A stretch of 64,000 nucleotides of DNA from assembly GCA_964187785.1 (NCBI GenBank), contig OZ076415.1, positions 47,988,001 to 48,052,000 of the forward strand, given 5' to 3'. The notes under the pieces are model-generated. The model was given only the letters and a program-made list of their open reading frames with translations. It had not been told where the DNA came from and did not search any database. Position numbers and translations under genes: made by a program. Source of the stretch: Amphiscolops sp. MND2022. Taxonomy: Eukaryota. Positions 1 to 52,285 of the stretch are shown here, one piece after another (within the stretch, counting starts at the first letter, position 1; every line of letters starts with the position of its first letter).

Positions 1-827
1 ATTTCGCCGAAAACGGAATTTTGGAATAACCATTTTTTGTCAGAAAAATCCATTTTTCGCAATTTTGGAGACGTATTCGCTTTGTCTAATGCTTGTGACA
101 CTCAAATCAAACATGGTACCAATGAATTGTTGAAAAAAGCAGCTATTTCTCTCGGACACGATTTAGAGTGTAATTGACATATGAGAGCTCCGTGTGGGAA
201 CAGACAAACTCTCAAGTGAGTAATCATCTGAGTGACAAGGTGAGTCAATCCAAAGCAACGCTATGAATGTTCGAAAGCTTTGGTGAGTCCCTGTAAATCA
301 GGAAGCTGAGCAGAAATCTCAAGGACAGGTTGGTGTATACCACTAGGTTCCAACCGATGACTCGGTCATAATTTAAATTTTGGACACAAACGGCAGCAAA
401 ATTGTTATGACTCCGGTAATGTTTAAACATCAGAAGTACTGCGACTGGCGAACAGTGAACCCCACAAGGCAAATCAATTTCATGCGAATCTTCGGGAAGA
501 ACTCAATATGAAGTATCGAGATACACTAGGGTTCCAAAAAGACACTCATTTCACTGACGAAAACTTTCAAAGCGCAAAATCTTTCAACATTGATTTTACA
601 AAAACGTCTCAAATGGTAAAGTCACTCAAATTTCATCAGCAATACAAGGGTATTTTTGTTTTGAAATCAAAATGAAAATTTCATGTTTAGCAATTATTCG
701 CAAAATGATTAAAATGAACAGCCACAACCAAAAACACTTGTAACTTTGTCGAAACTATTTTTCTACAGTAAAAATTGAAGATTTCACAGTTTGTGATCAT
801 TTTGCGGTGTATATTCTTGAGGGCGTT

Positions 828-1271
828 TGTAAAATTCTTGGGGTTTTTCCAATTTTGAGATCTCTTTTGCTTTAGATTTCTTCAGAGCGGGGCGTGAGGA
901 GAGCTTTACAGAAAAGATTTTATTGTCGATGTTTTACAGTCAACTATTCAATAGAAGCCCAAAATTTCTTGTCTTCAGATTATTGTCATCAATGTTTTAT
1001 TTTCTTCACTTTATTGTTTCCTGTCATGCGGAAATTAACCAATATATTTTTTATTAAAAACTGCCCATGCGTGTATTTAGAGGGTGGGTCGTAATATATT
1101 TTTTATTGCTTCTTTTATTGTTCCGGAAATTACTATTTGCGTTCCGGGGGTGGGTTTTATTATTAAGATTAAATATTCATAGCTCCAATTTGGGGTCAAA
1201 TCAATTAGTGAGGGTTTATATTAATTAGCTCCACTAAATTTAATACATTCTAATATTCAAAGAATATTACA
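828..1271 (-). repeat. 3' LTR (444 bp)
   Basis: Same sequence as 13071-13514 (offset 12243; the ORF track gives the same 66-aa ORF in both). Termini TGTAAAATTC / GAATATTACA form a 9/10 inverted repeat. Confidence 0.97.
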
Positions 1272-1291
1272 CTACCCGACTTTGATTCTTT
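1272..1291 (-). promoter_or_regulatory. Putative polypurine tract (imperfect)
   Basis: Minus strand reads AAAGAATCAAAGTCGGGTAG immediately before the 3' LTR. Purine-rich but interrupted; called mainly by position. Confidence 0.45.
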
Positions 1292-1350
1292 TACTCGCCG
1301 ATTTAAAATGTTCATCGAAACGTCGATAAAGTTAGTAGTTTTCTTTCCTT

Positions 1351-3579
1351 TCAAATGTGACCTGTTCGTAGTTGTCTATTGAGTTGTGAGTAGATTGGGG
1401 CATCGGGCTCAGGGTTTCGTGTTTCTTTTAGTTGAGATTCTGGAATCAGCAAACTGTTGTTTCTCCACGGAAATTTTTCGTCATTTTCCAATCCTTCCAG
1501 ATAATGGTCTTCCACCATCATTATCGGTTTCAGTGACACCTTTTGATTGTCCAGTTTATGAGAGAATGGTAGAAATTTATGTAGTCTCTTGTATCTGTGT
1601 AGGGCATACGTAACACCCAGGTGGAGTGCTGTACTGACAAAGAATACTACCAAGCCAATCGCAAGGTGACTTTTCCATGACAGATAATTGTTGAATTGTT
1701 TCTCCAGGGACGGCTTTAGAGCTGTGAGTTTCTGAGCAATTGGCTGTGCAATATAATTCAAGTCTGAACGATAGGAGTTATCCGGTTGGGATTGTAGTTC
1801 TAGTTTCAACGAACTCAGGAGTTGAATATTCGCTTCCACTCGTGTGTTGTAATGAGGGAGCTGGTCCACTGTTGGAATAAGGCTAAACAGTCTAGCCATT
1901 GGTTCCGGCAGTGTTACATTGAGTTTCAGTGGTGGGACTTTCATGCAAGTGCTAAGGTCAGATCTGATTCTAACGTTAGGGCCGATCAATTGTTTGCCAC
2001 AGCTGAGACTCACCAGGCATATCCGACAGCCATCTATCATTGTAGATCCTGCCGTGGTTGTTGCATTCATGTAGGATTCACGAAACTTGAAGTTGGATGA
2101 GGTTGAGGTTATGAGCCATATTCCATAACCTAGGTTCGTTGCTTTCTCTTTTAGCGGGAGTGTCACAGCTTCGGTGTCGCAGACTTCAATTGCGTCCATA
2201 ACATTTCCAAAATAGAGTACTGCCAAGCATGACGCATCTGATGTTTCAGTTGCCATGGTTTCGTGACAAATCTTATATTTGTTGGAGCCGATGCACTTTC
2301 CCAGTTGATCACGTGTTACCAATGCTGTTTCTCTTAGGTCTTCAGATATTGCGATATACTCCGTTTCTACAGTCCACTGGATTGCATACTCTGTTTCCAG
2401 TTGTGGCATGGGGACCACTATTGCTTTGTAGACTGTGAAAACTGTTTGGCGAGATGCCAGTGGAATAGACATTGTCATCAGCAAGCCATCGTCTAATGTT
2501 AGGACGTCTAAGAGCAGTCGCGCTTCATAATACGCCAGAAGCTCGTCCAAGGGAATAGCCAAAGTTAGTCTGTCTCGGGATTGTAGCTGTTCTGTTGCCA
2601 CCTGCTGTAGAATAATTTCCAGAGATTCTTTCGGTAACAAAGACATCGGGACATATTGCGTGAGTAAGGAAGGTATTGCGTTCATGATGTTCATCTGGAA
2701 GGCATACAGTGCTGCTCTGTAGGACTTGACATTACTGTAAATCAAAGATAGGAGTGATGAGATGGTGTCAAAGTTGAAGTTCACTTGTTGTCGTGTATAG
2801 AGCAGTTGATCACAATTTCTCATCTCGTGGATATTTTGCTGAAAGGTGTTGAACTGTTTCTCAATTGCTCTCCAGTTTTGGTTTTGGGTCTCAATGATTT
2901 GTCTTTGGATGCCATGTAACATCTCTAGTTCCTTTGATACTCGGAAAAACTTAGCATCCGTTGAGTTTGCCAGCTGCTGGATATTTTCGCCCAAAGATAT
3001 CGCGTATTCTCCCAGTTTTTCAATATTCCGTGCGTTCTGTTTTGCTTTTGCCTGACATGAGCCGAAAATACCCATAATTCCACAATCTCCAGAGCCAAAC
3101 ATTATGCCACCTCCGAATAAACCGATTGCACCTACCGCTGCTGCTGCTAACGGGAGAGCTCGTTTCTTCCGTGTACTTTTGTTTTCTTGTGTACCCTTTA
3201 GGAAAGATGCCACGTCACCCTTGATTTTAAGCAGGTCGTTTTGTGCAAATGAAATCTCCTTTTGTGTTTCTCTGAGGAGCCAGTCCATTTTGAAATCTAC
3301 TTCACTGGTATTTGTGAAGTTGAGATAACAGAAGTACGTTGGGGTTTGCCACATATTTTGGAGTGACTGTGCTATTTGATCAACATTCGAAATAAGGGTC
3401 ATTTCGAAGCGTGGGAAAGGGATCAAAAATTGGACATTGATAAATTTTTCTACCAGGAGGATTTTGGTTTCTTCATTAAAGAATATGCCTTTGTCCAAGC
3501 TGCCTTGACGGCTAGTAGTCTGAGCTATGTGAATAAAGATAAATAACAAGAGCATTGTGGGCTGAAGTCTAGGTCTCAC
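1351..3579 (-). CDS. env: Envelope glycoprotein, class I fusion type (F-like)
   Basis: Hydrophobic signal MLLLFIFIHIA (first ATG at 3555; the track start is a GTG). Furin site RKKR followed by fusion peptide ALPLAAAAVGAIGLFGGGIMFG. Heptad-repeat helices, Cys-rich ectodomain, N-glycosylation sequons, TM segment LAIGLVVFFVSTALHLGVTYAL and a tail with YSQL. Located between pol and the 3' LTR. Confidence 0.88.
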   Translation of the reverse strand: MRPRLQPTMLLLFIFIHIAQTTSRQGSLDKGIFFNEETKILLVEKFINVQFLIPFPRFEMTLISNVDQIAQSLQNMWQTPTYFCYLNFTNTSEVDFKMDWLLRETQKEISFAQNDLLKIKGDVASFLKGTQENKSTRKKRALPLAAAAVGAIGLFGGGIMFGSGDCGIMGIFGSCQAKAKQNARNIEKLGEYAISLGENIQQLANSTDAKFFRVSKELEMLHGIQRQIIETQNQNWRAIEKQFNTFQQNIHEMRNCDQLLYTRQQVNFNFDTISSLLSLIYSNVKSYRAALYAFQMNIMNAIPSLLTQYVPMSLLPKESLEIILQQVATEQLQSRDRLTLAIPLDELLAYYEARLLLDVLTLDDGLLMTMSIPLASRQTVFTVYKAIVVPMPQLETEYAIQWTVETEYIAISEDLRETALVTRDQLGKCIGSNKYKICHETMATETSDASCLAVLYFGNVMDAIEVCDTEAVTLPLKEKATNLGYGIWLITSTSSNFKFRESYMNATTTAGSTMIDGCRICLVSLSCGKQLIGPNVRIRSDLSTCMKVPPLKLNVTLPEPMARLFSLIPTVDQLPHYNTRVEANIQLLSSLKLELQSQPDNSYRSDLNYIAQPIAQKLTALKPSLEKQFNNYLSWKSHLAIGLVVFFVSTALHLGVTYALHRYKRLHKFLPFSHKLDNQKVSLKPIMMVEDHYLEGLENDEKFPWRNNSLLIPESQLKETRNPEPDAPIYSQLNRQLRTGHI

Positions 3580-3605
3580 ATTTTTAAAGTTTTGTACTAA
3601 CAGTA

Positions 3606-3941
3606 TTAGGATAGCTCAATCTCCATGTAGTCCAAGAGGTCAAGGAGTTTTTTCTTCAGATGCTGTTGTCCTTTCATAGTCTTTGTTAGTGTTTGGAGTG
3701 AGTGAAAGAGGTCCTCAAATTCTGGTGTTTCTTCGTCAATGTCCATGATACTGAAGGTGCTCGTGTTTTCTGTTGTCGCTTTAATAAAAAGGGGTGCACA
3801 GCATCCACATTGTTGAGTTTGAATGGTATGGATAAAGATTGGCTGTAGCTGTCGCGGCGGAGTCCATTTAAAAGGTGTCGGAAAGATGATTTTCATGGGC
3901 ACTAGTGTAACTCTCACTGTCAGGCCTTGTGATGTAGACAT
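3606..3941 (-). CDS. Small orphan ORF (111 aa) directly upstream of env
   Basis: ATG start, same strand as env, ends 27 bp before the env ORF. Contains a CGCC motif and an acidic/helical C-terminus. No recognisable family. Confidence 0.35.
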   Translation of the reverse strand: MSTSQGLTVRVTLVPMKIIFPTPFKWTPPRQLQPIFIHTIQTQQCGCCAPLFIKATTENTSTFSIMDIDEETPEFEDLFHSLQTLTKTMKGQQHLKKKLLDLLDYMEIELS

Positions 3942-4302
3942 TTTGGGTTAATTACTGTGAGTCAAAGTTGTCATTTCATATATGTAGGTTAGGGCTCTTT
4001 GGAATTTGTTGAATATTCAGAATGTTGAATGTTTTGGGTGACTTCTGCTACCGGCTGAATTTCAAGTAAATTTCAGGAGGAATGGGGTCGTTGGTACCCA
4101 ATGTAGAATCAATAAATGTTCAGCAGTCTTGTCAGCGTCTTGGTTATTAAATTCAAGCAAATAGTTTCCGCAACCATGGAAGATTTTTATTAAATAGACG
4201 TTGTTTTATTATTTGTCATTGTTCAACCTGAAGTTTAATAATCTGGCCTCATTAGAATGTACTCGCCCGGAAATTTTCAATTTCCATTTTAATTGAATTG
4301 TT

Positions 4303-4707
4303 TTGTTGACCCAAGCGTGGGTGGCGTCTCTTTGTTTACTGTTGTTTTATTGCCAGGCTATCTGCCAAAATGTTGAACTCTGCCAAAATCTGAACTTTGC
4401 CAAAATGTTGTTCGAGTTCTTTCAGAGCATGGATTGTTACAAGATTTCCTTGACTTCAAATATTGAGTTGGAGTGTTGCAACGACGGAACAACTGTCCTA
4501 GTGGATTCCAAAAAAGTCAGTTTCTCTCCTGTGGTTGATCCGAAATGTGGTGTCATTACTTCATCTGCAGTTCAGTCCAGAGAAGTCATGAGAGAACAGG
4601 ATGGATGGCCAATATTCGTTGTCGGCATTGGCATAGCTAGTTTAATTCTCTTCGTAATCGGGAGGGTGCTGTTCAAATTTGTGCGCAACAGAGTAAATCA
4701 ATCGTAA
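4303..4707 (+). CDS. Putative small single-pass membrane protein, antisense to the element
   Basis: Cys-rich region, C-terminal TM segment IFVVGIGIASLILFVIGRVLF and basic stop-transfer KFVRNR. The signal-like N-terminus starts at TTG; the first in-frame ATG is about 100 nt downstream. Confidence 0.45.
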   Translation: MLTQAWVASLCLLLFYCQAICQNVELCQNLNFAKMLFEFFQSMDCYKISLTSNIELECCNDGTTVLVDSKKVSFSPVVDPKCGVITSSAVQSREVMREQDGWPIFVVGIGIASLILFVIGRVLFKFVRNRVNQS

Positions 4708-4820
4708 ACTCAGCGATTCGCAACTCAGCTTACTTAGAGTTATATCTAGTCTTTCCTCTGTACTGGTATTAATTGTTTAGTTAGCTTTATCCATCCCGTG
4801 ACACCTTTTTATTTTGTACA

Positions 4821-5687
4821 ATGTTGTTGAAGGCCCATGGGTTTAACGTTAATGGTCATGGACTTTTTTCAGATAACATGGACAATTTTAATTTGTTGTT
4901 AGAATTGTGTCAAAGTCACTGTAAAGAAGTGGAGGCAGTATCACTCAGCGAAGCATGTAGGTTCAAAACTGCTTGCATCGTTAGAGGTGTTGCCTGCTCA
5001 TACAAACAGCCTGAGTTACAGTCGCTTATTCTGAATTCCACTGAGGTAGGCGAAATTTTGCGTTCATTCAAGAACTGGGGTGAGGAGAAGAAGAATGTGC
5101 AGTTCCCTGACACAAGGCTTTTAACTGCCCTCATGCCAAAAGAGAATGTCTATGATATCGCCAGTTGGTTCAATAGTGCCATTGTTGACCTACAAGTTGT
5201 TCATGAGCCTGTTCTGTTATTAAGTACCGGAAATTGTCTCACAGGGTTTCACGCAGACAGTCCGCCAACAGAAATTGTGGCTTCATTACTCCGCGGGCGG
5301 AAACTATGGGTTTTCGCTAGTCCCGGGTCTAAGTCCGCTGCAGTTTTGGTTAAAAGGCCCGAGGACAGTCATTTCCAACAGTTTATTGAAGATATGGTCT
5401 ACGGACGTTTTAAAGATCTGTCGTACTGTGTTCAGGAACCCGGTGATACAGTTTGTTTCCCTGCAAGGACTGTGCATTTAGTTCTCTCTGTAACTCCTAG
5501 TAATGATTGGAACTGTCTTCTGAGTCACACTATTTTACACGAAGAGGAGGAAGCCGCTAAGATGGAGACGAAGTTTTTCAACAGGTATTCTGACCAACGT
5601 TCCCGAGTCGTACAAGGTAAAAGGAACAAGAGGTCCGGGGTCACGAAGAAGCGATTTTCAGCACGCAGAAGAGTGCAGCCAAGATGA
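4821..5687 (+). CDS. JmjC-domain Fe(II)/2-oxoglutarate oxygenase, KDM2/KDM7-like, antisense inside the retroelement
   Basis: ATG start, intronless, 288 aa. LLLSTGNCLTGFHAD...LLRGRKLWVF...QEPGDTVCFPARTVHLV matches the KDM2/7 pattern (CLMS..GCYTDFHID...G.K.F...G.T.FIP.GWIH.V). HxD...H triad plus the 2OG-binding Thr and Lys are present. Basic NLS-like C-terminus. Confidence 0.82.
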   Translation: MLLKAHGFNVNGHGLFSDNMDNFNLLLELCQSHCKEVEAVSLSEACRFKTACIVRGVACSYKQPELQSLILNSTEVGEILRSFKNWGEEKKNVQFPDTRLLTALMPKENVYDIASWFNSAIVDLQVVHEPVLLLSTGNCLTGFHADSPPTEIVASLLRGRKLWVFASPGSKSAAVLVKRPEDSHFQQFIEDMVYGRFKDLSYCVQEPGDTVCFPARTVHLVLSVTPSNDWNCLLSHTILHEEEEAAKMETKFFNRYSDQRSRVVQGKRNKRSGVTKKRFSARRRVQPR

Positions 5688-5807
5688 TGGTTAGTGATGT
5701 CCTTTTCATACTTTAGTAGTGTTTTGTCGTATGCCCTATCGGCTAGGGGTTAGGTCATGCTAGTTATCTGACGTAAATTTGGTGTTGATGATGATTTCCG
5801 TGCATAA

Positions 5808-6366
5808 GTTCGCAGTGGCAAAATCGGAATTTTCTGCTAATGTAGGATTTTTTTTTCTTTTTTAAACACTTATTTTTTTTCTCTGGTGGATGAGCGCATC
5901 CGCTATCACCCTGTAGTGTAGTTCTCATGGAGTACAATCCGGGGAAGCCCAATATGCACTGATGTTTGCTTCCACTTAGCCAGTCGCAGTGGCAAAATTG
6001 TCGTTTTCGTGGAAACTTACTGAGGTCGAAAAAAAAATTGTAAATGGGAGTATGGAGTTTTTCTTATATAATTTTGCTTGTGCGCGCTTTTTCTATCACC
6101 CTATCATGTAGTACCCATTTAGGGGTGTCTGTCAAGGTATTTTCCGTGTAGGCATCTTGCCTCGTTTTCTCAGTCGCAGTGGCAAACTGTCAATTTTTAT
6201 CATAGGGTCAGATAGGATATTCTTGTCAAATAGGGTATTTATAGGTCAGCAATGCTTTTTGAAGGGACAATAGATACCCTATCTTGTAGGCAAAACTCTA
6301 AGGTGTCCATCGATGTGTTTTTTGTTAGGTTAGAATGTCATTTTTTTTATGTTCGCAGTGGCAAAA
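5808..6366. repeat. Four copies of TCGCAGTGGCAAA in degenerate ~180-bp units
   Basis: The CGCAGTGGCAAA core starts at 5811, 5985, 6175 and 6354 (spacing 174, 190, 179). A secondary CTATCACCCT motif recurs near 5904 and 6093. Confidence 0.8.
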
Positions 6367-6619
6367 TGAGAAGATATCGGATTTCAGAAATCAAGATAGT
6401 CGATTCACTGCTCTTTTTTGGAATAGTGTCGTGTCTAAGGACCTGTCCTTGAAGTTTTTCTGCAGAAAATTTTCAATCCATGGGTTTTCCGGGGTTTTTG
6501 CGGGTTGGGGAAGTGAAGGAACATAGATTTTTCACGGTTCTCAAGGGTAAATTCGGTTGGTTGGTAGTGTTGGTTAATGTTAACTTACGGGTGTCTGGTA
6601 TGGGAAGGTTGGTCCTTCA

Positions 6620-8641
6620 TTAGGCGTAGGGTGCTCTGTGAGGAAGTACACAAACGGTTATCGTCAAATTCGTATGTTGGAAGACTTCGTTCAAGAGGTT
6701 GCGTACTTGTTGCCATGGGAGTTGGTCTCTACCACATCCAAGTTTGGGTAATCGGATATTATCTACTCCATACTGTTGAGCATGGTCACGCATCAGTAGT
6801 AGGCTTGAACGCAGTGATGCAATTGAAGGCTTGTGGAAAAATTTTCGTTTCGTCACCAAGTTGTATATCCATCGTCGGGAATATTTGTCATAGAATGCAA
6901 AAACTGAACCAGGAGCAAGGTTCTTCGATGATTGTGTTTTTATTCGGGGGTATAGCCTGTCAAACTGGTTGGCTATACCTACCCCCATTGCAAAGTCCGA
7001 AGACACGCAGTGTGCCATACTAGAGGACGAACAGAAGATGTTGTCATAGACTATGTTGACATTGTTTCTTGTCTGACATATTTCATTGATGTCTGGGCGT
7101 GATCTTTTTTCATTCGATCCTTCTTGTTGAGATCCAGGTCTTTGGACAAATTGCATTTGCTGGCGTTCTAATCTGCGGTTTTTGAGTAGATCAATAAAGT
7201 TACGTGCTTCTTTAGTTTCCCCTTGTGATGTCCGTTTTATGGGGTTTGGGGTTTTCAATTGTCTTCCCGCAGCTTCAATCAGTTTAAAGTTTGGTTGAGG
7301 TTGTGTGGCTATTCTTTCTGATCTGCGCACGGGTTGTATTGTTTCAGGGTTGTCATCCGAACTGTCGGAAGTTTCCGGTATGTCTGCAGTCAGGTTGACT
7401 GGGGGTGTTAGTCGTATCCTCGTATGGTCCGGTTCTACTATGGTTTGGTTCTCATTCGCGGTATTGTGGTTTATCGCTGATGGTATAGGTAGTGGTGGGT
7501 GTTGTTGGGCCTGATTGTTTTGTCCAAAGGAAATTGAAACTCTTACTGGGCTATCAAATGTTGTCGGTTGGACAGACTCAACAGGTGTGTCATCTTGTAG
7601 TAATGATGGGTAACCTCTGTCGAAGTAATCTGTGTCTCCTCTGTTATGTCCCAGTGATGGGTCCGTTCTAAAATTTGCAGGATCAATTTCGGGGATATCT
7701 TCAACTTGGTATTGTGGTGTAATAGGTCTGATCCTGATTCTATGCACAATCTGTGTATAGTTTGTTCCAGTTTTGCGAATAAGATAATTAGAATCTGTCA
7801 ATACTTTTTCCACTCTATAGAGTGCATGCCATTTTTGTATTAATTTGGAGCTGAAGGTAGATTGTTCTGTCAGTTTAGGGTTTAGTAGGAGGCAAAACTG
7901 GTGTTGTTGTAATGGGTTTGCACGTGCTTTCTGATCATAATACCTGCGGTATCGTGCGAAAGACTTTTCGAGACTCTCTTTTGTTTTGGAGAATTTCTTT
8001 AACATTTCATCTCGTAAAGATTCCACAAAGTCGTAATTGAAAGCTGCCTTTTGGATACATGTGCTGTAGAATCTGAGATCCAACGGTTTCATTGGTTCTC
8101 TGCCGTGGAAGAGTACTGTTGGTGCGCATCCAATAGAAGTATGGTATGATGTATTGTGGATGAAAGTCGCCAAAGGTACGTACCGATGCCAGTTTGTGAA
8201 TGTACCATTACTGTTTAGTTTGAGTATTCTTGTGAGTGCTGCGTGTGATCGTTCAACTACTCCAATTGTCTGTGGGTGCTTAAGAGAGGCATGTGTAATT
8301 TTAATTTCTAATAGCTTTGTCAGTTCACTAAAAAGTTCTGAGACAAATTGTGTTCCAAGGTCCGATATTATTTCTTTTGGTATAAAGCTGTGATTGAACA
8401 TAATTGAAGCCAATGCTGCAGCTACTGATGACGCACTTATTGTGGTCAAGGGTACCGCAAAAAGGTATTTGGAAAAGACATCAATTGCTGTAAGCACATA
8501 TTTATACGGAGATGAGGGAAATGCTCCCTGAATATCGATCTGCATTATGTCTCCGGGAAGGTAGTTTTTGAAGATAGTTCGCTTAGCGGAGGTTTGAGTC
8601 GAGATGGTTGGACAAGTTTGAGTTGTAAACAGGTTGAGCAA
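6620..8641 (-). CDS. pol: Integrase catalytic core + GPY/F-like module + low-complexity linker + C-terminal TARG1/OARD1-type macrodomain
   Basis: DDE residues in QIDIQG, IISDLGTQF and VERSH; KLIQKWHALY module. C-terminal ~140 aa AHCVSSDFAMGVGIA...YNLVTK...LPKLGCGRDQLPW matches the TARG1/Poa1p macrodomain pattern. Lies in the -1 frame relative to the upstream pol ORF. Confidence 0.93.
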   Translation of the reverse strand: MLNLFTTQTCPTISTQTSAKRTIFKNYLPGDIMQIDIQGAFPSSPYKYVLTAIDVFSKYLFAVPLTTISASSVAAALASIMFNHSFIPKEIISDLGTQFVSELFSELTKLLEIKITHASLKHPQTIGVVERSHAALTRILKLNSNGTFTNWHRYVPLATFIHNTSYHTSIGCAPTVLFHGREPMKPLDLRFYSTCIQKAAFNYDFVESLRDEMLKKFSKTKESLEKSFARYRRYYDQKARANPLQQHQFCLLLNPKLTEQSTFSSKLIQKWHALYRVEKVLTDSNYLIRKTGTNYTQIVHRIRIRPITPQYQVEDIPEIDPANFRTDPSLGHNRGDTDYFDRGYPSLLQDDTPVESVQPTTFDSPVRVSISFGQNNQAQQHPPLPIPSAINHNTANENQTIVEPDHTRIRLTPPVNLTADIPETSDSSDDNPETIQPVRRSERIATQPQPNFKLIEAAGRQLKTPNPIKRTSQGETKEARNFIDLLKNRRLERQQMQFVQRPGSQQEGSNEKRSRPDINEICQTRNNVNIVYDNIFCSSSSMAHCVSSDFAMGVGIANQFDRLYPRIKTQSSKNLAPGSVFAFYDKYSRRWIYNLVTKRKFFHKPSIASLRSSLLLMRDHAQQYGVDNIRLPKLGCGRDQLPWQQVRNLLNEVFQHTNLTITVCVLPHRAPYA

Positions 8642-11600
8642 TTTCTGATGTAGCTTGCAATTTGTTCTATGTAATTCGGGCAGTAAAAGCGTCTACGAAA
8701 CTCGGCAATTGTTCTCGTTATTCCCAAATGTCCTCCTGTGGGTGAGTTATGTATTCTATAGAGGATTTCTTTTAGCATGTGTTTGGGTACACATACTTGT
8801 TTATAAAGGATAGTACCGTCATGATCGTAATAGTTCCGTTTAAGGATTCCATTGTTTATGGTTAATCGCGGGAGTTGTTTCCGATATTTCTGTTCTTCTC
8901 CTGATGAATAAATATTATGTGGTGGTTCTGTACCTTCTGTAAGCCAGGTTGTCACCTTCGAGAGTAAGGCGTCATTTTGTTGTTCCCTTTCTAGAATTGC
9001 CACCGATGTCTCAAGTTCTGGATAATTGTCCATCGGGTTTTGTAGTTGTAGTGCGTTGATCGGGAGTGCTTGTTTGTATCTGGTCAATTGGATTTCTTCA
9101 TTTTGGGTTGCCAGGGCTTTTAGGTGTTGTGAGGCATTCTCAAAGTTTCCAGATTGTTTCAATGTTATTAATGTGTTCATATCAACCACTTGAAGTAGGT
9201 CATCGGGGAATTCTTCAGAGAAAAGTTCATTTATTGTATTGTCTGGTAATTTAGCTCGAATATCAATCTCTATTTCGCGTACCGGAATACGGTCTGTAAG
9301 TTTTAATTCTACTGTTTCGTTTGGGTTTGTTTGCAGGCGAGATAAAAAATCCGCTGCTGCATTTGCTTTCCCAGGAATATGAGCGACTACTATGTTGAAT
9401 GTGGTTACTCTGTCGACATAGTTCCAAAGGGATGGAGGAATTGTCTTGGCTTGAAAGAAGCGTGTGAGGCTTTTGTTATCTGTCAGTATCAGTACAGGTT
9501 TTTCGCTACCCCATATGAAGTGTGAGAAGGTTTCCAGGGCAAAATATAGTGACAGGAATTCTTTGCAGTAGATTGACATTTTCAACTGAGCTGTGTTGAA
9601 GACTTTCGATCCAAATGAGACTGGTGCGTATGACTTTACATCTTCACCTTTCACATTTTTGACATAGTCTTCAATCATGAGTACGAATCCACTCGAATGG
9701 TAACTTGCGTCACACAAAATTACATATTGTAGTCCTGGTTTTGCCAATCGTAGTGTTTGCGTTGCAGTTGTTTTGAGTTTCTCCTTCAAGGTTTCAAACG
9801 AATCCAGTATTTCTTCTGTCACTTCAAAAGCCACATTTTTCCGCAGTAGTTTATAGAATGGTATGAGATGCTCATTCAAATTTGGGATGAAGTTTCTGAA
9901 AAACTGAAGGAAACCTATCAGTCTTTTTACTTGTTTAACAGATTTTGGTATCTCCAGTGTTTTCAAGAATTTCTCTATTTTTTCTTTTTCTGGTTTTAGG
10001 CCTTCTTTGGTAATCACATTTCCAAGAAAACTAACTTGTTCAGAACCAAATACACACTTTTCTGGGGATAATTTGAGTCCTGAGCGTCTGAGACATTGGA
10101 ATATTTGTCTGAGGTATGGTAGGAGTTGTTCCGGTGATTCGACTCCACATCCGATGTCATCCATGAATTGTGTACACACATTTGCTGAGAGGCATGGTTC
10201 CAAATAGTTTCTCACAAAAGCACTGAATCCAGTTACAGATCGGTTCAATCCTCTCGCTAATCGCTGATAGGCTAGGGTTCGTGAAGCAAAGTTGAATGCC
10301 AATAGTTGTACCGAGAGTGGGTCTGCCATTTGTACACAATGGTAAGCCTGAGAGCAATCAAGTTTGCAAAACAGTTTCTTTCCGGCAAAATGAGCAGTTG
10401 TGTCTGCCATTGTTGAGATTGGAAAGTTATTGTTATGGTAATCATGAAGGAGTAAATGGTTGATACGGCGTAGGTCTACTAGGATTCGAAGTTCTCCATT
10501 AGTTTTACGGTGTGCGAAAATTGGACTGCTATATTTTGAATGGTTGAGACTGGTGATGATTCCAAAGTATTGGAGAAGTGCTAGTTCTACTTGTAGTTCT
10601 TCTCGTAAATGTATTGGCGTCGGTGGGCTTTGCGTGTAGACAGGTTTATCATGTTCAGGAGTCAATTTCATGGTGATCTCTGAATTATAGCCGACGTCAA
10701 ATCTATGTTTGGCAAATATATCCGAGAATTCAATCAGTAGTTCTTCTAATTGCTGTTTTTGCTGTCGATTCAGTACCGAGTCTTTCCATTGGAATCTTTG
10801 GAGGAATGTTTCACGGTAGCTAGCGTCCATTTGTGGGTCTATTTTATCTAACTCTTGGAGCTTCAATAGTTCCTCATAAATCCTTTTTTCCACTCCTTGG
10901 AGTTTTTCTGGATTTCGACAAGATTCAGGGGTTTGAAACCAAAAATTTTTGTAGTCTGGTTGAGGTCTAGGAGGTTGCGATTCTGAGCTAAAAGTCTGAT
11001 CTATTACCAATTGGTTTATTTCAGTGACGAAATCATCTGGGTTTTTGAATTTTGCTAAAGTCAATAATTGAGGGTCAATTGGTGTTAAGGTTTCGGCTTG
11101 TTGGGGTGAGAGAAATTTAAAGAGGGCTATGTCTGAATTTCGTGGTATCGTGACTTCATTTTCTTGAAGGTTCAATGCAGAAATGAATAGGTGACCTGAA
11201 GAGTCAACTTTCGAAAGGGATGAGGTTATACACAAACCAGTTTTTTCCTCGAAACTAGTTTTCGGTTCGACTATCCCGCAAAGCTCCGATAATTTATTCT
11301 TGGAGAGTAGCACACATTTTAAAATCGTTTGTTGGTTCGGGGCAATCGTTGTTTTCTCGACCGTTCTGATTGAGTACTGGGCTTTTGTAGTTTTCTCAAG
11401 TTTGTCCATTTCATTCAATTGTAATGTCAGGTCTGGAAGTTTCATCAAGTTTTCTTTTGGGTATAGTTCTACAGAGTTATTTTTGAAAAAAGGGTTTCCC
11501 AAAATAATACTGTTTGTATTGGGCAGGACAAGGAATGTTTCCCTAAAGGAATGATTGGCAATGGAAAATTGGAGTTCTATTTGGCCACGCACAGGTATAA

Positions 11601-11979
11601 GTTGTCCGGAAGCTAATTTCACTTTACTGACCTGTTTTGGTGTAGTGAGTTGCGGGATGTTTCCACAAGAAGATTTCAAGTCTTCATAGTCATGTTCACT
11701 GATGGCATTTGCAGAGGCTCCAGTGTCAATTAGAGCTTTTCTCGTTTCTTTAGAGGAAAATTTTAGTGGTACATAGGATAGAATATCACCCTCAAGGGAT
11801 ATGCATGCAGTAATTTGGTGGTCCTCTCTTTGTGTCGTTTCTTCCGTTTTGTCTTCATACTGGCGTGGCTCTACTCGTTTTTTGGTGCTGTTTGATATGG
11901 AATTTGCTGGTTTCTCTGTGCTGGTTGACGTTGAATACAATCTTTGGCGTAGTGGTTTGGGTATCCACAGTTGTAACAT
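8545..11979 (-). CDS. pol: Pol polyprotein: aspartic protease, reverse transcriptase, RNase H, integrase HHCC zinc finger
   Basis: Protease ALIDTGAS. RT LVDLRRIN, LDCSQAYH and FMDD. RNase H CDAS, KEFLS, TDNKSL and ADFLSRL. IN zinc finger HNSPTGGH...CSTC. Overlaps the gag end in the -1 frame. Confidence 0.96.
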   Translation of the reverse strand: MLQLWIPKPLRQRLYSTSTSTEKPANSISNSTKKRVEPRQYEDKTEETTQREDHQITACISLEGDILSYVPLKFSSKETRKALIDTGASANAISEHDYEDLKSSCGNIPQLTTPKQVSKVKLASGQLIPVRGQIELQFSIANHSFRETFLVLPNTNSIILGNPFFKNNSVELYPKENLMKLPDLTLQLNEMDKLEKTTKAQYSIRTVEKTTIAPNQQTILKCVLLSKNKLSELCGIVEPKTSFEEKTGLCITSSLSKVDSSGHLFISALNLQENEVTIPRNSDIALFKFLSPQQAETLTPIDPQLLTLAKFKNPDDFVTEINQLVIDQTFSSESQPPRPQPDYKNFWFQTPESCRNPEKLQGVEKRIYEELLKLQELDKIDPQMDASYRETFLQRFQWKDSVLNRQQKQQLEELLIEFSDIFAKHRFDVGYNSEITMKLTPEHDKPVYTQSPPTPIHLREELQVELALLQYFGIITSLNHSKYSSPIFAHRKTNGELRILVDLRRINHLLLHDYHNNNFPISTMADTTAHFAGKKLFCKLDCSQAYHCVQMADPLSVQLLAFNFASRTLAYQRLARGLNRSVTGFSAFVRNYLEPCLSANVCTQFMDDIGCGVESPEQLLPYLRQIFQCLRRSGLKLSPEKCVFGSEQVSFLGNVITKEGLKPEKEKIEKFLKTLEIPKSVKQVKRLIGFLQFFRNFIPNLNEHLIPFYKLLRKNVAFEVTEEILDSFETLKEKLKTTATQTLRLAKPGLQYVILCDASYHSSGFVLMIEDYVKNVKGEDVKSYAPVSFGSKVFNTAQLKMSIYCKEFLSLYFALETFSHFIWGSEKPVLILTDNKSLTRFFQAKTIPPSLWNYVDRVTTFNIVVAHIPGKANAAADFLSRLQTNPNETVELKLTDRIPVREIEIDIRAKLPDNTINELFSEEFPDDLLQVVDMNTLITLKQSGNFENASQHLKALATQNEEIQLTRYKQALPINALQLQNPMDNYPELETSVAILEREQQNDALLSKVTTWLTEGTEPPHNIYSSGEEQKYRKQLPRLTINNGILKRNYYDHDGTILYKQVCVPKHMLKEILYRIHNSPTGGHLGITRTIAEFRRRFYCPNYIEQIASYIRNCSTCLQLKLVQPSRLKPPLSELSSKTTFPET

Positions 11980-13040
11980 ACATTTTTCGAGTAACTGGTC
12001 TCTTCAATATGTCCATCATTAGATGACTGTTGTAGCTGTGGGTTGTTGTTACCATAGTTGTTTTGGTAACCTCTGTTATTGTTGTAGTTGCCATAGTACC
12101 CTCTGTTGTTGTTATATCTACCTCTTCCTCTGTTGTTTCCTCGATTGAAGTTTCCTCTTCCTCTATATCCTCTCGAGATATTGTATCTGTTGTTACCTCT
12201 GTAGTTAGAGTTTCTGTTCTGATTATTGTCGTTGTTGTAATTCTGGTTACCCATGTTTTGAGAGCTGAATGTGTTGATTCTGTTTGACATTTCAGTTTGG
12301 TGTTGTTTGATTTCATCCTGTTGTTGAGTTAATTTAGTTAATGCACTAACCAAGTTTTCTGAGAGCGTTGTACTCACTTCGTTGAATGCGTCTCTGGACC
12401 AATCGTCACTTGGGCACAGCTCAAAGAATACCATTTGTCTTCTGGCCACAGTGCACAAATCTTGAACTGTTGCTGCTTCATTTTGGTCTAGGAGTTTTCT
12501 TTTGATGAAGTTTGGCATTGAGTTGGTGAAAATCTCCTTGATTCTTCTGTTTCTTTCATTCGTTGCATTGTCCAAAACTGTCTGATTCGCTGCTTGTGCT
12601 GCTGCAACTCTGTCAATTTCAGCTTGGTCATTTGGTGGGTTAGCTGGTGGAATAGGTGCAAACACTGGGTCAGGATAGGCTTGTGTTGCTTTGATTTGCA
12701 CTTGTACGAGGAAGTCTTCTGGGCTACCAGTTTTGTGGTCAAATTTCAAGTTATGTAGTTGTAGTTTGTGTAATTCTCGAAGATTTGGGTTACAATAGTG
12801 GTTGCGTAGAGCTGTAATAGCTGCATCGAAGTTATCTCTTGTAGCTTGTGGTAATGTTCTAAAGAATTGTAGGGCTTGGTCTAGTAGGTGTAGTTGCAGG
12901 AATTGTGGTCGGTTTGCCGCTGGGATGTTCCCCACATTGATCAAGCTTCTGAGTAGACTCTCGAAATCTGGCCAATTTTCATCTGGTTTTCCGCGGAATG
13001 GGTTGAGTGTGATGTGTGGTTGAGGGTTTGCAGCTGCCAT
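11871..13040 (-). CDS. gag: Gag (capsid + nucleocapsid with CCHC knuckle)
   Basis: ATG 30 nt after the 5' LTR. N-terminal PFRGKPDENWPDF typical of retrotransposon Gag. RG/N-rich region. Knuckle CYNCGYPNHYAKDC (CX2CX4HX4C). Confidence 0.93.
   Translation of the reverse strand: MAAANPQPHITLNPFRGKPDENWPDFESLLRSLINVGNIPAANRPQFLQLHLLDQALQFFRTLPQATRDNFDAAITALRNHYCNPNLRELHKLQLHNLKFDHKTGSPEDFLVQVQIKATQAYPDPVFAPIPPANPPNDQAEIDRVAAAQAANQTVLDNATNERNRRIKEIFTNSMPNFIKRKLLDQNEAATVQDLCTVARRQMVFFELCPSDDWSRDAFNEVSTTLSENLVSALTKLTQQQDEIKQHQTEMSNRINTFSSQNMGNQNYNNDNNQNRNSNYRGNNRYNISRGYRGRGNFNRGNNRGRGRYNNNRGYYGNYNNNRGYQNNYGNNNPQLQQSSNDGHIEETSYSKNVCYNCGYPNHYAKDCIQRQPAQRNQQIPYQTAPKNE
11877..11883 (-). promoter_or_regulatory. 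Candidate -1 ribosomal frameshift slippery site A AAA AAC (gag-pol)
   Basis: In the gag frame CCA AAA AAC GAG TAG. The heptamer is correctly phased, one codon before the gag stop, and pol is open in the -1 frame. Confidence 0.7.
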
Positions 13041-13052
13041 TGTCTTTTCCTC

Positions 13053-13070
13053 ACTTCCTTCTTGTCACCA
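13053..13070 (-). promoter_or_regulatory. Primer binding site (primer tRNA not assigned)
   Basis: Minus strand TGGTGACAAGAAGGAAGT abuts the end of the 5' LTR; TGG is complementary to tRNA CCA. Confidence 0.75.
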
Positions 13071-13514
13071 TGTAAAATTCTTGGGGTTTTTCCAATTTTG
13101 AGATCTCTTTTGCTTTAGATTTCTTCAGAGCGGGGCGTGAGGAGAGCTTTACAGAAAAGATTTTATTGTCGATGTTTTACAGTCAACTATTCAATAGAAG
13201 CCCAAAATTTCTTGTCTTCAGATTATTGTCATCAATGTTTTATTTTCTTCACTTTATTGTTTCCTGTCATGCGGAAATTAACCAATATATTTTTTATTAA
13301 AAACTGCCCATGCGTGTATTTAGAGGGTGGGTCGTAATATATTTTTTATTGCTTCTTTTATTGTTCCGGAAATTACTATTTGCGTTCCGGGGGTGGGTTT
13401 TATTATTAAGATTAAATATTCATAGCTCCAATTTGGGGTCAAATCAATTAGTGAGGGTTTATATTAATTAGCTCCACTAAATTTAATACATTCTAATATT
13501 CAAAGAATATTACA
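13071..13514 (-). repeat. 5' LTR (444 bp)
   Basis: Direct repeat of 828-1271, followed in element orientation by PBS and gag. TATAAA and several AATAAA on the minus strand. Confidence 0.97.
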
Positions 13515-14344
13515 GCGTTTTTAGAAAAAGTGTTATTGTCAAAAGTTAGAAATCTGAATCAAAGGTACAAAGTTTCTCAAACCCTTTTTGTAACGAATAG
13601 CGGTTCTCGAGATATTGCATGATAAAATTCGAAAAATACAAAAAGTAAAAAAAAATAGCGAAGACTGTTAGCTACTAACAACATTTGTAGTTTTTCTGAG
13701 TTCAAAACGAAACAAAAACACAATTCTGGGTAAACTTTGAGGCTTTGTGTATCTATTGGTTATTCACCAATATTTTTAAGCTGCCGACCTTCATAATCGC
13801 AACTGACAGTAGGTACGCTTTATGGATGATGGAAAGGGAACGGATGTCATGTTATAAAACAAACTAATGGACTCTTGACAATCTGCGTTTACAACCACTT
13901 CTATTACCTTTCTGCATTCTCGCTTTTTGTCGTCCACTTCTCCAGCGTGAAATGTTTGAACAACTAGTGATTTACCTTAATTTTGTTCTGGGCTATATAA
14001 TTGATGAATTTTCAAGTGTAAACAATTGTATAAGTTCTTATTAATTCCTATTGAAGATTCATCTGAGCTTTGCCATTCTTTACATGTTAAACTCACAATC
14101 TAACAGAATCTCTAATAACCATTTCAATCCAACATCTCTTCTAAAAGCAATTTGAAATAAATACAAAATTGCCTACTAACTGCTAGGGCTACCATTATGT
14201 AATGGCAATCCGTGAAAGAATAGTCAGGTGCCATAAAAAGTTGACAAAATTGAATGGAGTGATTCATCAACGCATTACGAGTTTCCACCCACATCTCGGC
14301 AATTCCAATTTTAAACAATTTTTTGGTGAACCCCTCCAAAGATT

Positions 14345-18196: not shown

Positions 18197-21100
18197 CTGA
18201 AACAAAATACAAGAAAATAACATGAGACATGAAAGCATTTTAATAGCTGCAGCCCATGATAAAATGGTGCTGCAATCCAAAAATGGTACGGAAGCTAAAC
18301 CAAAAACAAAAATTGTTCATTTTTTCTTATTAAAGAACTTTCAAAGAAATTTTACTGGAGCGAACACGGGGTGTGAATTCTTTCGAGAAGTTTTCTAGAT
18401 TTCATAACAATAACGAGTGAATGTACGGAATCGTATAATAACTCTCATCCTTAAAGCCTAACATAACTTTATCCAATTATCAATGCTTTCTTTGACTATT
18501 TATACGTAAAATACCCTCCCGCAAATTGGGGATTCTGTATACGTATATAAATAACGAGTGAATAAAAAAATTTCATTCATTTGGAATTTGTCAAAGTCTA
18601 ATTTGATTAGTTGATACTCTAAAGCATCCGTGCGATAGGCGAGGAAAGAAATTGTGCTGGACATACGTTAAAAACGGAAGGTGTGGTTGGGTTGGTGGGG
18701 TCGAAGCTGATGTAGTTGTCAATTTGGTAGAGTACCTGCACGAAAAAGTGCAGAAAAGACTCTGATATGTACTCTGGAGTGACTGTGGTCGTAGCGATGT
18801 CCACAATGGGCGACTTCTGTAAAGATTTCCGGTCGAATATCAACTTTTTCAGTGCATTGAAATGTCGCTCCGGTAACAGTTTTCTTTCATCTCCCACCTA
18901 AACATACCAACAAACTTGAATAAACTTTACACTAAGCAATGACGTTATTCTTAAAAATACAATACTTGATGACATTGGGTACATCCTGAAAGCTGAGATA
19001 CCTGAAAGCTGAATTTTTTCGCACGATGTTCAATAATTTTTTCATTCGAAAAATTGAAAACTCCAAAGGCTGGTCTTGAGAAAAAATAAGAATGTTGAAT
19101 ATTGTATATCTAGAAAAACTTAATTCTGTGGGGTTTGCTATCTGAGTGTTGAGGACTGGGGAATATAGCTGAAATCTCTTGGACCAAATGCTTCCGTGCA
19201 TTAAAATTGATGAAGCTTAAATCAAAGAATCTTTCAAGCCCTCCTGAGAACGCGGCGAAATCAAAAACTCAAAAATTCATATTGCAGATGCTTGGAACTA
19301 CTCAACTTATCAAAAATGGCTATATGCAGCAAAAAAATAGCGGAAGTTATAGCGGAAAAAATTTTTGAAGTAATGAAACATGTCTCAAAATTATGAACAT
19401 CGCCCAAACAAGCTGAAATCTCAATCGATTCTTGTTGAACTGGCTTGGCCCTTGATTCACCTTATGGTAGCTACAATAAATGGCCAGTGAGTGATACTTA
19501 CACATCTCACAAAAGCGCCTCTGTTGTCAAGGTCAACTATGAGCACGTCTTCATACTCGCAACTGCTAGTGACGTCAGGTCTGGCCTTGGCACTGGAAGG
19601 TACGAGAGTTCCAATGAGAAAAGGGGAAGGACACTTGGCAATCTCGGTTCCCAGCTCTAGACTGGTCATAGGCACAAACACATGTTCCCATGTGAGTGGA
19701 TATATGAGCGCATGCAACGCCATACCACAAGACGACAACACGCTGAGTTTGGAGCTCCAGAGCCACACCTTGCGTTCTAAAAGCAGTGAAGCGAACACAA
19801 GAACGAGAGATTTGGCATCCAAGTATAAAGGCAGACATTGTAAGTTGACATGTTCGTACGTTGCATCTTTTCGTTCCCTTCGGATTGACAGAGAATGCTG
19901 ACCCGGTTTCAACTTGGCGTGTTCAATGTAGAATGGGTACTTGATTTGTATACTCTCGCCAGGCGCGGGTACAGGACATTCGTACATGGACTGAAGTACT
20001 GTGAAAATTTGACATTGCTTCTTGACTAGTTTCAGCTCGCAGCAAATCTAAAATGTACAAACGTTTGCCTTCTTGTATCTGAAAAATTGCTGATTCAAAA
20101 TTCTAGGATTATAATTCCTCAAAATTATCAAAAATGATTCTGACTAATCGAAGTATTCATGAGAAATGATTCAATCGAAGTAACGAGTAAAAATTGGATA
20201 GCAATTGACAACTAACACTATCGAAAAGATCGAAACATCTCTGTTGACTGATGATGCAATAAACAGTAGGCAAGTATTCGCTGTACGACTTTTTCGACAG
20301 ACGACTACCGCCATAGGCTGCTTCGGGCGACGCAGTAGTAGTGGGTGAAACATTGCCGTTGTTTGCACCAGATGATTCATCCGGCCAGATACGACGACAG
20401 TAGGCGAACACCTGGCCCCCCTTATCATCAGTGAACATGAAGGAATATGTTTCATCCAGATCGTTCCGCTTCGGGGCGATGGAGTCGGGACCTGAACTGA
20501 CGTCCGGGAAGCAAAAACTGGGCACGTGTTGAAAGAAAGGACACTCTTTGGCATCGATGACATCTTTGTGTGGATACGAAGTGATGACAACTGGAACGTA
20601 TTCGTCTCCGCCTCCTGTAAAAATAACGGATCCCTGCAAAAACCCGAGAAAATAATCAATTTCAATCCATTTTTCAACCGGGTGACTTGAAATTCACCCC
20701 CATGTCAAAGGGTTACTGAAAACGGGTGCTTTTCTTTCAGCAACATTAAACCACAGACAGGTGCAACTTTCATATCAAGGGTTGCGCCTGTTCCAAAACA
20801 ACTTTTGTGATTCTTCGTTTCGGTTTAGTTTTTTAACTGCAACTTTCACATTTGCGTATTATTTCAACCTATATTATCAATTGACAGCACTTCAGGAATC
20901 TAAAAGTCATTTTTCGAACGGAAGTATGTTGGAATAAAGTAGTGAAATTTCACCTGCAATTTTTTTGTGCTTCAGCCCAACATGTAGGGCCACAATAAAT
21001 AGCTGGGTGCTTTCTTTACTCCTCTCGTGGTTAAGAGATAGGGCACTGTCTCCGAGAGCACCACCCTCATTAGTACTTGAAACCTCAGTACCCGTCACAG

Positions 21101-46348: not shown

Positions 46349-46421
46349 CAGCCACGACGGGACTCGAACCCGCAATCTTCTACTTAGGAGGCAGACGCCT
46401 TATCCATTAGGCCACGCGGCT
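46349..46421 (-). tRNA. tRNA-Arg: tRNA-Arg(CCT), representative intact copy of the array
   Basis: AGCCGCG TG GCCT AATGGATA AGGC G TCTGC CTCCTAA GTAGA AGATT GCGGG TTCGAGT CCCGT CGTGGCT G: all four stems pair, CCT anticodon, Arg-type A20 and G73, followed by TTTT. Confidence 0.93.
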
Positions 46422-52212: not shown

Positions 52213-52285
52213 CAGCCACGACGGGACTCGAACCCGCAATCTTCTTCTTATGAGGCAGACGCCTTATCCATTAGGCCACGCGGCT
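52213..52285 (-). pseudogene. tRNA-Arg-body copy with anticodon mutated to CAT
   Basis: Loop CTCATAA; the anticodon stem carries a G-A mismatch. Confidence 0.7.

Follow-up and report, generated by a model that had tools for sequence, protein, structure and literature searches.

An env-bearing Ty3/gypsy-type element of Amphiscolops sp. with a TARG1-type macrodomain behind its integrase and a probable JmjC-type oxygenase gene on the opposite strand

Macrodomains of positive-strand RNA viruses (corona-, alpha-, hepe-, and rubiviruses) reverse antiviral ADP-ribosylation by PARPs. Among reverse-transcribing elements, macro-domain or CNPase open reading frames (ORFs) are ascribed to fish epsilon-like endogenous retroviruses (ERVs) in a passage of PMC4977317, which cites Basta et al. 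2009. Env-carrying Ty3/gypsy "errantiviruses" with an env of the glycoprotein F type are established across metazoans (Chary & Hayashi, eLife 2026, PMC13524379), and long terminal repeat (LTR) retrotransposons of bdelloid rotifers have captured enzymatic ORF3s (GDSL esterase, DEDDy exonuclease, dUTPase), some of these elements with a paramyxovirus-F-like env (PMC5408684). Plant Retand elements harbor antisense TRP28 ORFs and a tandem-repeat array in a long post-pol region (PMC11963269). With respect to silencing, VANC of the Arabidopsis VANDAL transposons is a transposon-encoded anti-silencing protein (PMC5735166, PMC10398659), and Epe1, a JmjC protein of fission yeast, opposes heterochromatin marked by histone H3 lysine 9 methylation (H3K9me) (PMC6576747). 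Here, we describe an LTR element located in a 64,000-nucleotide stretch of Amphiscolops sp. MND2022 (contig OZ076415.1, positions 47,988,001 to 48,052,000; hereafter the window), whose pol ends in a TARG1/OARD1-type macrodomain and which carries a probable JmjC-type oxygenase gene antisense to gag-pol-env, and we weigh which function this cargo may have.

Anatomy of the element and the macrodomain in pol

Positions 828-13514 of the window represent a single LTR element on the minus strand; no further copy was found in the remainder of the 64-kb window. Its 444-bp LTRs are identical at 444 of 444 positions and have TG...CA ends, and the 5-bp target site duplication (TSD) GCGTT is present on both flanks, in line with the preliminary description, which had reported a young LTR element with an intact TSD. 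In element orientation, the order reads 5' LTR, gag, pol in the -1 frame (protease, reverse transcriptase (RT), RNase H (RH), integrase (IN), macrodomain), repeat array, the antisense JmjC and small membrane-protein genes, ORF111, F-type env, and 3' LTR, with the two antisense ORFs and the repeat array located in a pol-to-env interval of ~2.7 kb. We consider it nearly certain that this gene order belongs to a recently active, env-bearing Ty3/gypsy-type ("errantivirus-like") LTR family. The Pfam combination of RT_RNaseH_2 and Integrase_H2C2 points to the Ty3/gypsy placement. Of the features of Metaviridae, the TG...CA LTR pair with a short TSD, the order protease-RT-RNase H-IN, and a CCHC gag are present, as are those by which Chary & Hayashi define an "errantivirus", an F-type fusogen as third ORF and copies >98% identical over the ORFs. 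A weak DUF1759 match brought up a Bel/Pao-type gag, which was rejected given its sub-threshold status in Pfam and the gypsy-type pol domains.

For comparison, seven loci (L001-L007) from two assemblies were considered: L001 is the window copy, L002 and L003 are from the same source assembly (ERZ25074608), and L004-L007 are from ERZ26859043. The window copy has open frames for gag, ORF111, env, and JmjC, with the lengths seen in the sister copies, while pol carries one frameshift and the small antisense ORF one defect. Because of these two lesions, the window copy is probably not autonomous, yet very young. Both sister insertions, L002 and L003, have an uninterrupted pol ORF of 1667 aa and an intact gag of equal length; the single pol frameshift of the window copy may be a sequencing error. 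Since pol lies in the -1 frame relative to gag, the canonical heptamer A AAA AAC, situated in the gag frame 3 nt ahead of the gag stop, is a candidate site for programmed -1 frameshifting.

The macrodomain comprises the last 154 residues of pol, behind the integrase and a long linker. It has no ORF of its own, so that its first assignment as a TARG1-type macrodomain between the LTRs holds in identity but not as a separate ORF. The top PDB match was human OARD1/TARG1 (phmmer E = 5.7e-25, residues 15-146 of 154), and a profile built from 31 macrodomain sequences matched OARD1 at E = 2e-58. Within this 31-homologue alignment, K79 and D120 are invariant, aligning with the Lys of the OARD1 TK motif and the Asp of its GCGxD motif, respectively. 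Their spacing equals that of K84 and D125, 41 residues apart, which we take to be the catalytic pair of human TARG1. At E <= 1e-3, the PDB matches consisted only of OARD1 and bacterial or other cellular macrodomains and included no viral macrodomain, assigning the domain to the TARG1 class rather than to the MacroD-like class of RNA viruses. By sequence comparison, the C-terminal domain of pol is thus clearly a TARG1/OARD1-class macrodomain with a preserved Lys/Asp pair, and a putative ADP-ribose hydrolase.

An exhaustive HMMER scan of 1.84 billion representatives yielded 3350 homologues of the macrodomain. Among the top 150 representatives, the alignment of at least 15 reaches into the upstream integrase or linker region, and the Lys as well as the Asp is kept in 14 of 15 pol-fused macrodomains. 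The full polyproteins P0097 and P0165 belong to other gypsy-like lineages and have the layout RT-RH-IN-Macro, and no JmjC was found at their loci (L008 and L009). The fusion of integrase and macrodomain is not confined to the family of the window element. L008 (ERZ650209) encodes an RT-RH-IN-macro polyprotein of 1559 aa with a glutamate-rich tail of ~130 aa beyond the macrodomain and may represent an independent or older fusion lineage. At L009:9295-12003 (JGI 3300059824), a gypsy-like RH-IN-macro polyprotein is followed by a 902-aa ORF on the same strand; considered as a potential relative of the window env, this ORF showed no similarity to it.

The probable antisense JmjC gene and the F-type env

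The second cargo gene encodes a 288-aa protein and, together with the small membrane-protein ORF, lies on the plus strand. The preliminary description had recognized a JmjC ORF between the LTRs; its identity is borne out, with the orientation and the pairing to be corrected accordingly. The Pfam model PF02373 was matched by 10 out of 11 JmjC family members at E < 0.1 (best 1.4e-5) with essentially no other model detected, and precomputed PF02373 matches exist for two JmjC relatives. H219 and K161 are invariant in the family alignment, and H144, D146, and T141 are conserved to at least 90%. These positions include the iron triad H144-x-D146...H219 and the 2-oxoglutarate lysine K161.

A scan of JGI metagenomes identified the nearest non-element relative, a 268-aa Cupin_8/JmjC protein (L012; JGI Ga0066410_1003345, 939-1745) recognized by Pfam at 5.9e-25 and 6.6e-14. 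Searched against the PDB, it retrieved JMJD6 at 7e-21, followed by KDM7, PHF8, and JMJD5. The JmjC family profile aligned with this protein at an hhalign probability of 91.5% (E = 8.6e-7), and residues 132-226 of the window JmjC matched it directly (BLASTP E = 2e-8, 25% identity over the catalytic core). Furthermore, both proteins have an exact eight-residue motif of the catalytic core in common (residues 203-210 of the window JmjC). H144, D146, K161, and H219 stand opposite the HID, K, and H of the L012 protein, which in turn align with the JMJD6 motifs. The L012 protein is probably bacterial and is adjoined by a 223-aa ORF on the opposite strand.

Three results limit the identification of the window protein as a JmjC enzyme. 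Taken alone, it reached only E = 6e-4 and 20.7 bits with PF02373, thus falling below the 24-bit cut-off. The AlphaFold2 (AF2) model based on the 11-sequence family had a predicted local distance difference test (pLDDT) score of 35, and Foldseek returned noise with this poor model, so that the double-stranded beta-helix fold is presumed for the protein. In addition, the family profile gave no PDB sequence match even at E <= 10. Nevertheless, the matches of 10 out of 11 members, the preserved catalytic residues, and the bridge from L012 to JMJD6 led us to accept the product of the 288-aa ORF, with high confidence, as a predicted JmjC-type 2-oxoglutarate (2OG)/Fe(II) oxygenase. Searching a second time by word index, with the JmjC alignment as query, brought in just six further relatives, which were all element-borne and none of them cellular, and a scan of IMG/VR gave no relatives. 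Only 26 relatives were detected among 5.8 billion clusters, all in ENA assemblies. The last 40 residues contain 15 K/R, and this basic C-terminal tail is conserved across alleles, which suggests a nuclear or nucleic-acid association.

The env shows the predicted hallmarks of a membrane fusogen. Besides a signal peptide and long helices, it has an RKKR cleavage motif, behind which lies a hydrophobic, fusion-peptide-like segment, and a C-terminal transmembrane (TM) segment, along with 12 Cys and 7 N-glycosylation sequons. In total 95 homologues were found at 38-88% identity. Pfam is nearly blind to this protein (Baculo_F was matched in 1 of 38 members, plus two precomputed matches), wherefore a fold comparison was needed. 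The AF2 model from a 38-sequence alignment reached a pLDDT of 73. Foldseek matched it in the PDB to the F proteins of Hendra virus, Nipah virus, parainfluenza virus 5 (PIV5), Newcastle disease virus (NDV), and respiratory syncytial virus (RSV), with E down to 2.8e-6 and a probability of 1.0. In BFVD, chuvirus-like glycoproteins, an abalone herpesvirus protein, and baculovirus F/Ld130 were matched at E 1e-21 to 1e-13, the baculovirus F matches ranging from 5e-19 to 1e-13. TM-scores were low (0.2-0.4), as is expected between different conformations. Based on the Foldseek F matches, the RKKR motif with its hydrophobic segment, and the C-terminal TM segment, the modeled env is an F-type class I fusogen of the paramyxo-/baculovirus F type, consistent with its initial description as fusion-type.

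Family-wide conservation and an exchangeable cassette

Macrodomain, JmjC, small antisense ORF, ORF111, and env were found together in six of the seven loci (L001-L006), covering both assemblies. L002 and L003 are independent insertions with LTR identities of 100% and 99.8%, each flanked by its own 5-bp TSD, and outside the cassette described below L001, L002, and L003 are 98.5-99.2% identical. With three independent young insertions bearing their own TSDs, the family is recently active. In the older copies L004-L007, pol and env are interrupted by several stops and frame changes, while the gene order is kept. The macrodomain is recognizable in L004-L006, and JmjC, small ORF, ORF111, and env are recognizable in all four, these old copies having been retrieved via intact JmjC ORFs, which constitutes an ascertainment bias; E-values from the scan of the relatives' loci are relative to the candidate stretches only. 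Two short contigs of a third assembly (NCBI GCA_013332895.1 / JAAUXW01) contain one relative each, a decayed one of JmjC and one of env. Clusters of near-identical proteins contained at least 8 and at least 10 JmjC variants and at least 38 env variants, located on different contigs.

Between cassette alleles, JmjC showed dN of 0.22-0.51 at saturated dS, giving an omega of 0.03-0.08 by maximum likelihood and 0.165 in a single NG86 estimate, values that are rough owing to this saturation. Comparison of the window copy with two diverged family members resulted in a dN/dS of 0.04-0.12 for the macrodomain. As judged from these ratios, both domains are under strong purifying selection. The preliminary description had named a cargo restricted to this copy, one decayed in others, or one with dN/dS near 1, as outcomes that would speak against it; we found co-occurrence of macrodomain, JmjC, and env across six of seven loci including diverged relatives, and ratios far below 1 (0.03-0.17 for JmjC, 0.04-0.12 for the macrodomain). 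Being family-wide and under purifying selection, macrodomain and JmjC therefore benefit the element rather than being dead cargo.

Extension of this comparison to the region between pol and env revealed a sharply bounded cassette (Table 1). The backbones of L003 and the window copy are 98.5-98.6% identical, whereas inside the cassette the proteins share only 64% (JmjC) and 47% (small ORF) identity. On its right side, the cassette ends exactly at the first 13-mer repeat core TCGCAGTGGCAAA. Low dN/dS at saturated dS argues for the recombinational exchange of old cassette alleles. The antisense cassette circulates as a set of old, deeply diverged alleles recombining between near-identical backbones. 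In-situ hypermutation or diversifying selection as the source of the cassette divergence was rejected on the basis of a dN/dS far below 1 and saturated dS. L005 is a mosaic with respect to the window element (env 91%, gag/pol 73-74%, JmjC 65% identical), and recombination therefore shuffles env between lineages, too. Between L001 and L003, dS is higher in gag (~0.08-0.11) than in env (~0.01).

The small antisense ORF is located upstream of JmjC on the same strand. It has a predicted signal-peptide-like N-terminus, 8 Cys, and a TM segment near the C-terminus, is recognizable in all relatives at 27-59% identity, and has no Pfam match. It is not conventionally initiated in the window copy, in contrast to the L003 allele. 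No sense-strand ORF >72 aa lies beneath the cassette, which led us to discard an overlapping sense-strand gene as the cause of its conservation. The repeat array lies in the spacer that separates the JmjC ORF from the pol stop, with all four repeats kept in L002 and L003; it might bind proteins, terminate the convergent transcripts, or act as a hotspot of template switching. ORF111 has no Pfam match either; it is present in all seven compared loci and is 78% identical in L005, with a dN/dS of ~0.25-0.37.

Table 1. Features of the element in window coordinates
Feature	Position	Strand	Basis
TSD, left copy, GCGTT	823-827	.	identical 5-mer at 13515-13519
3' LTR (element orientation), 444 bp, TG...CA	828-1271	-	444/444 identity with 13071-13514
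Purine-rich tract adjoining the 3' LTR, polypurine-tract-like (putative)	1272-1296	-	read from sequence
env, 734 aa from ATG (frame open from 3579)	1351-3555	-	sequence features, AF2, Foldseek
ORF111, 111 aa, sense strand, just upstream of env	3606-3941	-	conserved in relatives
Small Cys-rich type-I-like membrane-protein ORF, antisense, 126-134 aa	4303-4707	+	sequence features, relatives
Exchangeable cassette	4438-5810	.	BLASTN L001 vs L003: ~68% identity, JmjC core alone alignable
Probable JmjC-type 2OG/Fe(II) oxygenase ORF, 288 aa, antisense to gag-pol-env	4821-5687	+	Pfam, family alignment, bridge protein L012, dN/dS
Four degenerate ~180-bp repeats, each with exact core TCGCAGTGGCAAA	5805-6372	.	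4 matches vs 0.14 expected
pol: PR (protease)-RT-RNase H-IN-linker-macrodomain, one frameshift in window copy	6620-11979	-	ORFs and Pfam
TARG1/OARD1-type macrodomain, pol C-terminus	6623-7084	-	Pfam, phmmer, profile, dN/dS
Integrase, H2C2 zinc domain and rve core	8285-8790	-	Pfam PF17921 E = 5e-16, PF00665 E = 1.4e-11
RNase H	9412-9819	-	Pfam PF17917, PF17919
Reverse transcriptase	10021-10509	-	Pfam PF00078 E = 1.7e-19
Aspartic protease	11479-11772	-	Pfam PF13650, PF13975
gag, 389 aa, CCHC zinc knuckle	11871-13040	-	Pfam PF00098 E = 7.7e-5
A AAA AAC heptamer, gag frame, 3 nt ahead of gag stop (candidate frameshift site)	11877-11883	-	read from sequence and ORF frames
Primer-binding-site-like sequence, starts TGG, directly after 5' LTR	13053-13070	-	read from sequence
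5' LTR (element orientation)	13071-13514	-	identity with 828-1271
TSD, right copy, GCGTT	13515-13519	.	identical 5-mer at 823-827

Outside the element, the window contains a DENN-domain exon at 19457-19987 (-) (Pfam E = 6e-27) and, at 33076-35088 (-), an ORF of 670 aa that is rich in Ser, seems disordered, and lacks a Pfam match; the two may belong as exons to a single large host gene close to the insertion. From 45215 to 64000 (-), running off the right end of the window, extends a tandem array of 61 predicted tRNA genes, comprising 58 tRNA-Arg(CCT), 2 Arg(TCT), and 1 Met(CAT)-like variant. Its repeat units measure 194 bp and ~475 bp, with a GC content of 0.46 and a strong AT skew, and Rfam confirms tRNA for three copies of the array inside the stretch scanned.

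Possible roles of the cargo and comparison with known systems

The preliminary description had interpreted the locus as a possible infectious retrovirus-like lineage with its own counter-defence kit. Its anatomical part, in which a TARG1-type macrodomain, a JmjC ORF, and a fusion-type env lie within one young LTR element, stands, with the amendments that the macrodomain is not a free ORF, JmjC is antisense, and pol of this copy is broken. A counter-defence role, in which the cargo would erase ADP-ribose and oxidize chromatin or protein, is plausible from the predicted domains. Since the macrodomain is made within Gag-Pol beside the integrase, it would be delivered together with both and travel inside the particle and the pre-integration complex. 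There, it might free proteins of the element, or DNA ends and intermediates, from mono-ADP-ribose attached by host PARPs. JmjC, with its basic, nuclear-localisation-like tail, would be made from its own antisense transcript and act in the nucleus. As a demethylase or hydroxylase, it could keep proviral copies or incoming DNA unsilenced, or else have a host factor as its target. Cell-to-cell passage would be provided by the F-type env, as in Drosophila gypsy. We regard the designation of macrodomain and JmjC as erasers of host modifications as tentative, somewhat short of an even chance, and place the favored explanation taken as a whole, anatomy and mechanism together, at even.

A more specific version of this explanation holds that the lineage encodes an eraser pair, with a particle-borne TARG1-type ADP-ribosylhydrolase directed against PARP-based restriction and a separately transcribed nuclear JmjC removing repressive methylation (e.g., H3K9me guided by PIWI-interacting RNAs) from its own copies, the cassette being kept as ancient alleles that are shuffled in an arms race with the host. 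In this full form it would be a rather unlikely scenario.

Several observations weigh against the two cargo domains being counter-defence erasers. JmjC histone lysine demethylases (KDM) usually carry chromatin-reader or targeting domains; Pfam detected none in the JmjC protein, which thus lacks this hallmark of a histone demethylase, and the closest relative that could be identified belongs to the JMJD6/Cupin_8 type of hydroxylases. Since TARG1-type domains function in DNA-repair contexts as well, the macrodomain could aid integration instead of countering defence. Antisense transcription opposite the genomic RNA would seem to yield double-stranded RNA (dsRNA), at a cost to the element. The decayed locus L014 (ERZ26859043) retains gag, pol, IN-macro (macrodomain 52% identical), and a short env remnant ~0.9 kb after the macrodomain, while the antisense cassette and ORF111 are not recognizable in it, having been either deleted or never present in that lineage. 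The roughness of the omega values and the retrieval bias of the old copies add to these points.

The strongest competitor assigns both domains to the replication and integration of the element itself: by removing ADP-ribose from DNA ends or from PARP1 at integration intermediates, the macrodomain would let gap repair finish, and JmjC would hydroxylate a host or element protein (a splicing, translation, or capsid factor, in the manner of JMJD6 or FIH) for expression. The position of the macrodomain directly behind the integrase, the recurrence of the IN-macro layout in gypsy-like lineages without JmjC, and the Cupin_8/JMJD6-like character of the sole identifiable JmjC relative, together with the missing chromatin-reader domain, fit such helpers. 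The small size and basic tail of JmjC, in turn, would suit a nuclear role of either kind, and at the sequence level helper and counter-defence functions cannot be separated. We consider such helpers unlikely, but still a contender to be taken seriously.

Clearly less probable, and in our view doubtful, is a self-regulatory or exclusion function of the antisense cassette. In this case, the small membrane protein would exclude superinfection by interfering with env or the env receptor, and JmjC would tune the transcription of the element or the antisense RNA dampen the sense RNA, comparable to HBZ, the antisense gene of deltaretroviruses. A signal peptide, Cys-rich ectodomain, and TM segment in the small ORF would match this, and old cassette alleles swapped between backbones are expected of an interaction module. 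The antisense orientation and the tandem-repeat array in the region from pol to the 3' LTR also mirror Retand (PMC11963269). However, the window lineage has an intact JmjC but a defective small ORF, and the JmjC catalytic residues are conserved under strong purifying selection, which argues for an enzymatic rather than a purely RNA-level function. That macrodomain and JmjC are chance host passengers without a role, or the locus an assembly chimera or nested insertion of an unrelated gene, is very improbable and already largely refuted: LTR retroelements do transduce host sequences and no relative of the JmjC family bears a name and its members come from only a few assemblies, but the same gene order recurs in three independent young insertions with their own TSDs and in diverged, decayed relatives of another assembly, the dN/dS ratios, taken over saturated synonymous divergence, lie far below 1, nothing but the coding core of the cassette can still be aligned, and the catalytic residues are kept.

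The escape of animal retroelements from silencing is ascribed chiefly to their choice of niche, to transfer by env, and to changes in sequence. Few examples of anti-silencing proteins encoded by transposons exist, and those we found are all from plants. The JmjC, selected and retained throughout the family, and the integrase-fused TARG1-type macrodomain would be directly testable candidates for enzymatic counter-measures to chromatin silencing and ADP-ribosylation in invertebrates, and the theme of the "viral macrodomain" would be extended from RNA viruses to reverse-transcribing elements. The diverged, recombining cassette alleles represent a natural data set for the modular evolution of accessory genes in ERV-like elements.

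Like the macrodomains of RNA viruses, the one described here resides within the replicase polyprotein of a selfish replicator and is a presumed ADP-ribose hydrolase; unlike them, it is of the TARG1/OARD1 class. The preliminary description regarded the combination of cargo genes as unfamiliar for Metaviridae. This is upheld for JmjC, as we found no retroelement-borne JmjC in the literature, and searches of the literature for JmjC or macrodomain in LTR retrotransposons and retroelements gave nothing relevant, with Repbase/Dfam outside their scope. It is not upheld for the macrodomain, which has precedent in other gypsy-like pol-macro fusions of public data and, according to the passage of PMC4977317 cited above, in fish ERVs. 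As portrayed there, the fish epsilon-like ERVs share with the window element the acquisition of a cellular macro domain by a retroelement, but are vertebrate Retroviridae with extra ORFs, while the window element is of the Ty3/gypsy type, with a TARG1/OARD1 domain in frame with the integrase and JmjC in addition.

The errantiviruses of PMC13524379 have the gag-pol-env order, the LTRs, the F-type class I env, and several >98% identical copies in common with the window element. The text of that study makes no mention of a macrodomain, JmjC, or antisense genes, and in the window element ~2.7 kb separate pol from env and accommodate a repeat array and two antisense ORFs, and pol ends in a macrodomain. 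With Retand it shares a post-pol region containing antisense ORFs and a tandem-repeat array; Retand, however, has plant hosts and no env, and its antisense proteins are putative DNA binders instead of a 2OG oxygenase and a membrane protein. The modular capture of enzymatic genes is also common to the rotifer LTR elements, in which the enzymes are others and encoded on the sense strand, with neither macro nor JmjC among them. With regard to the proteins that oppose silencing, VANC is not an oxygenase and Epe1 is the product of a host gene, whereas the JmjC of the window is encoded by the element itself.

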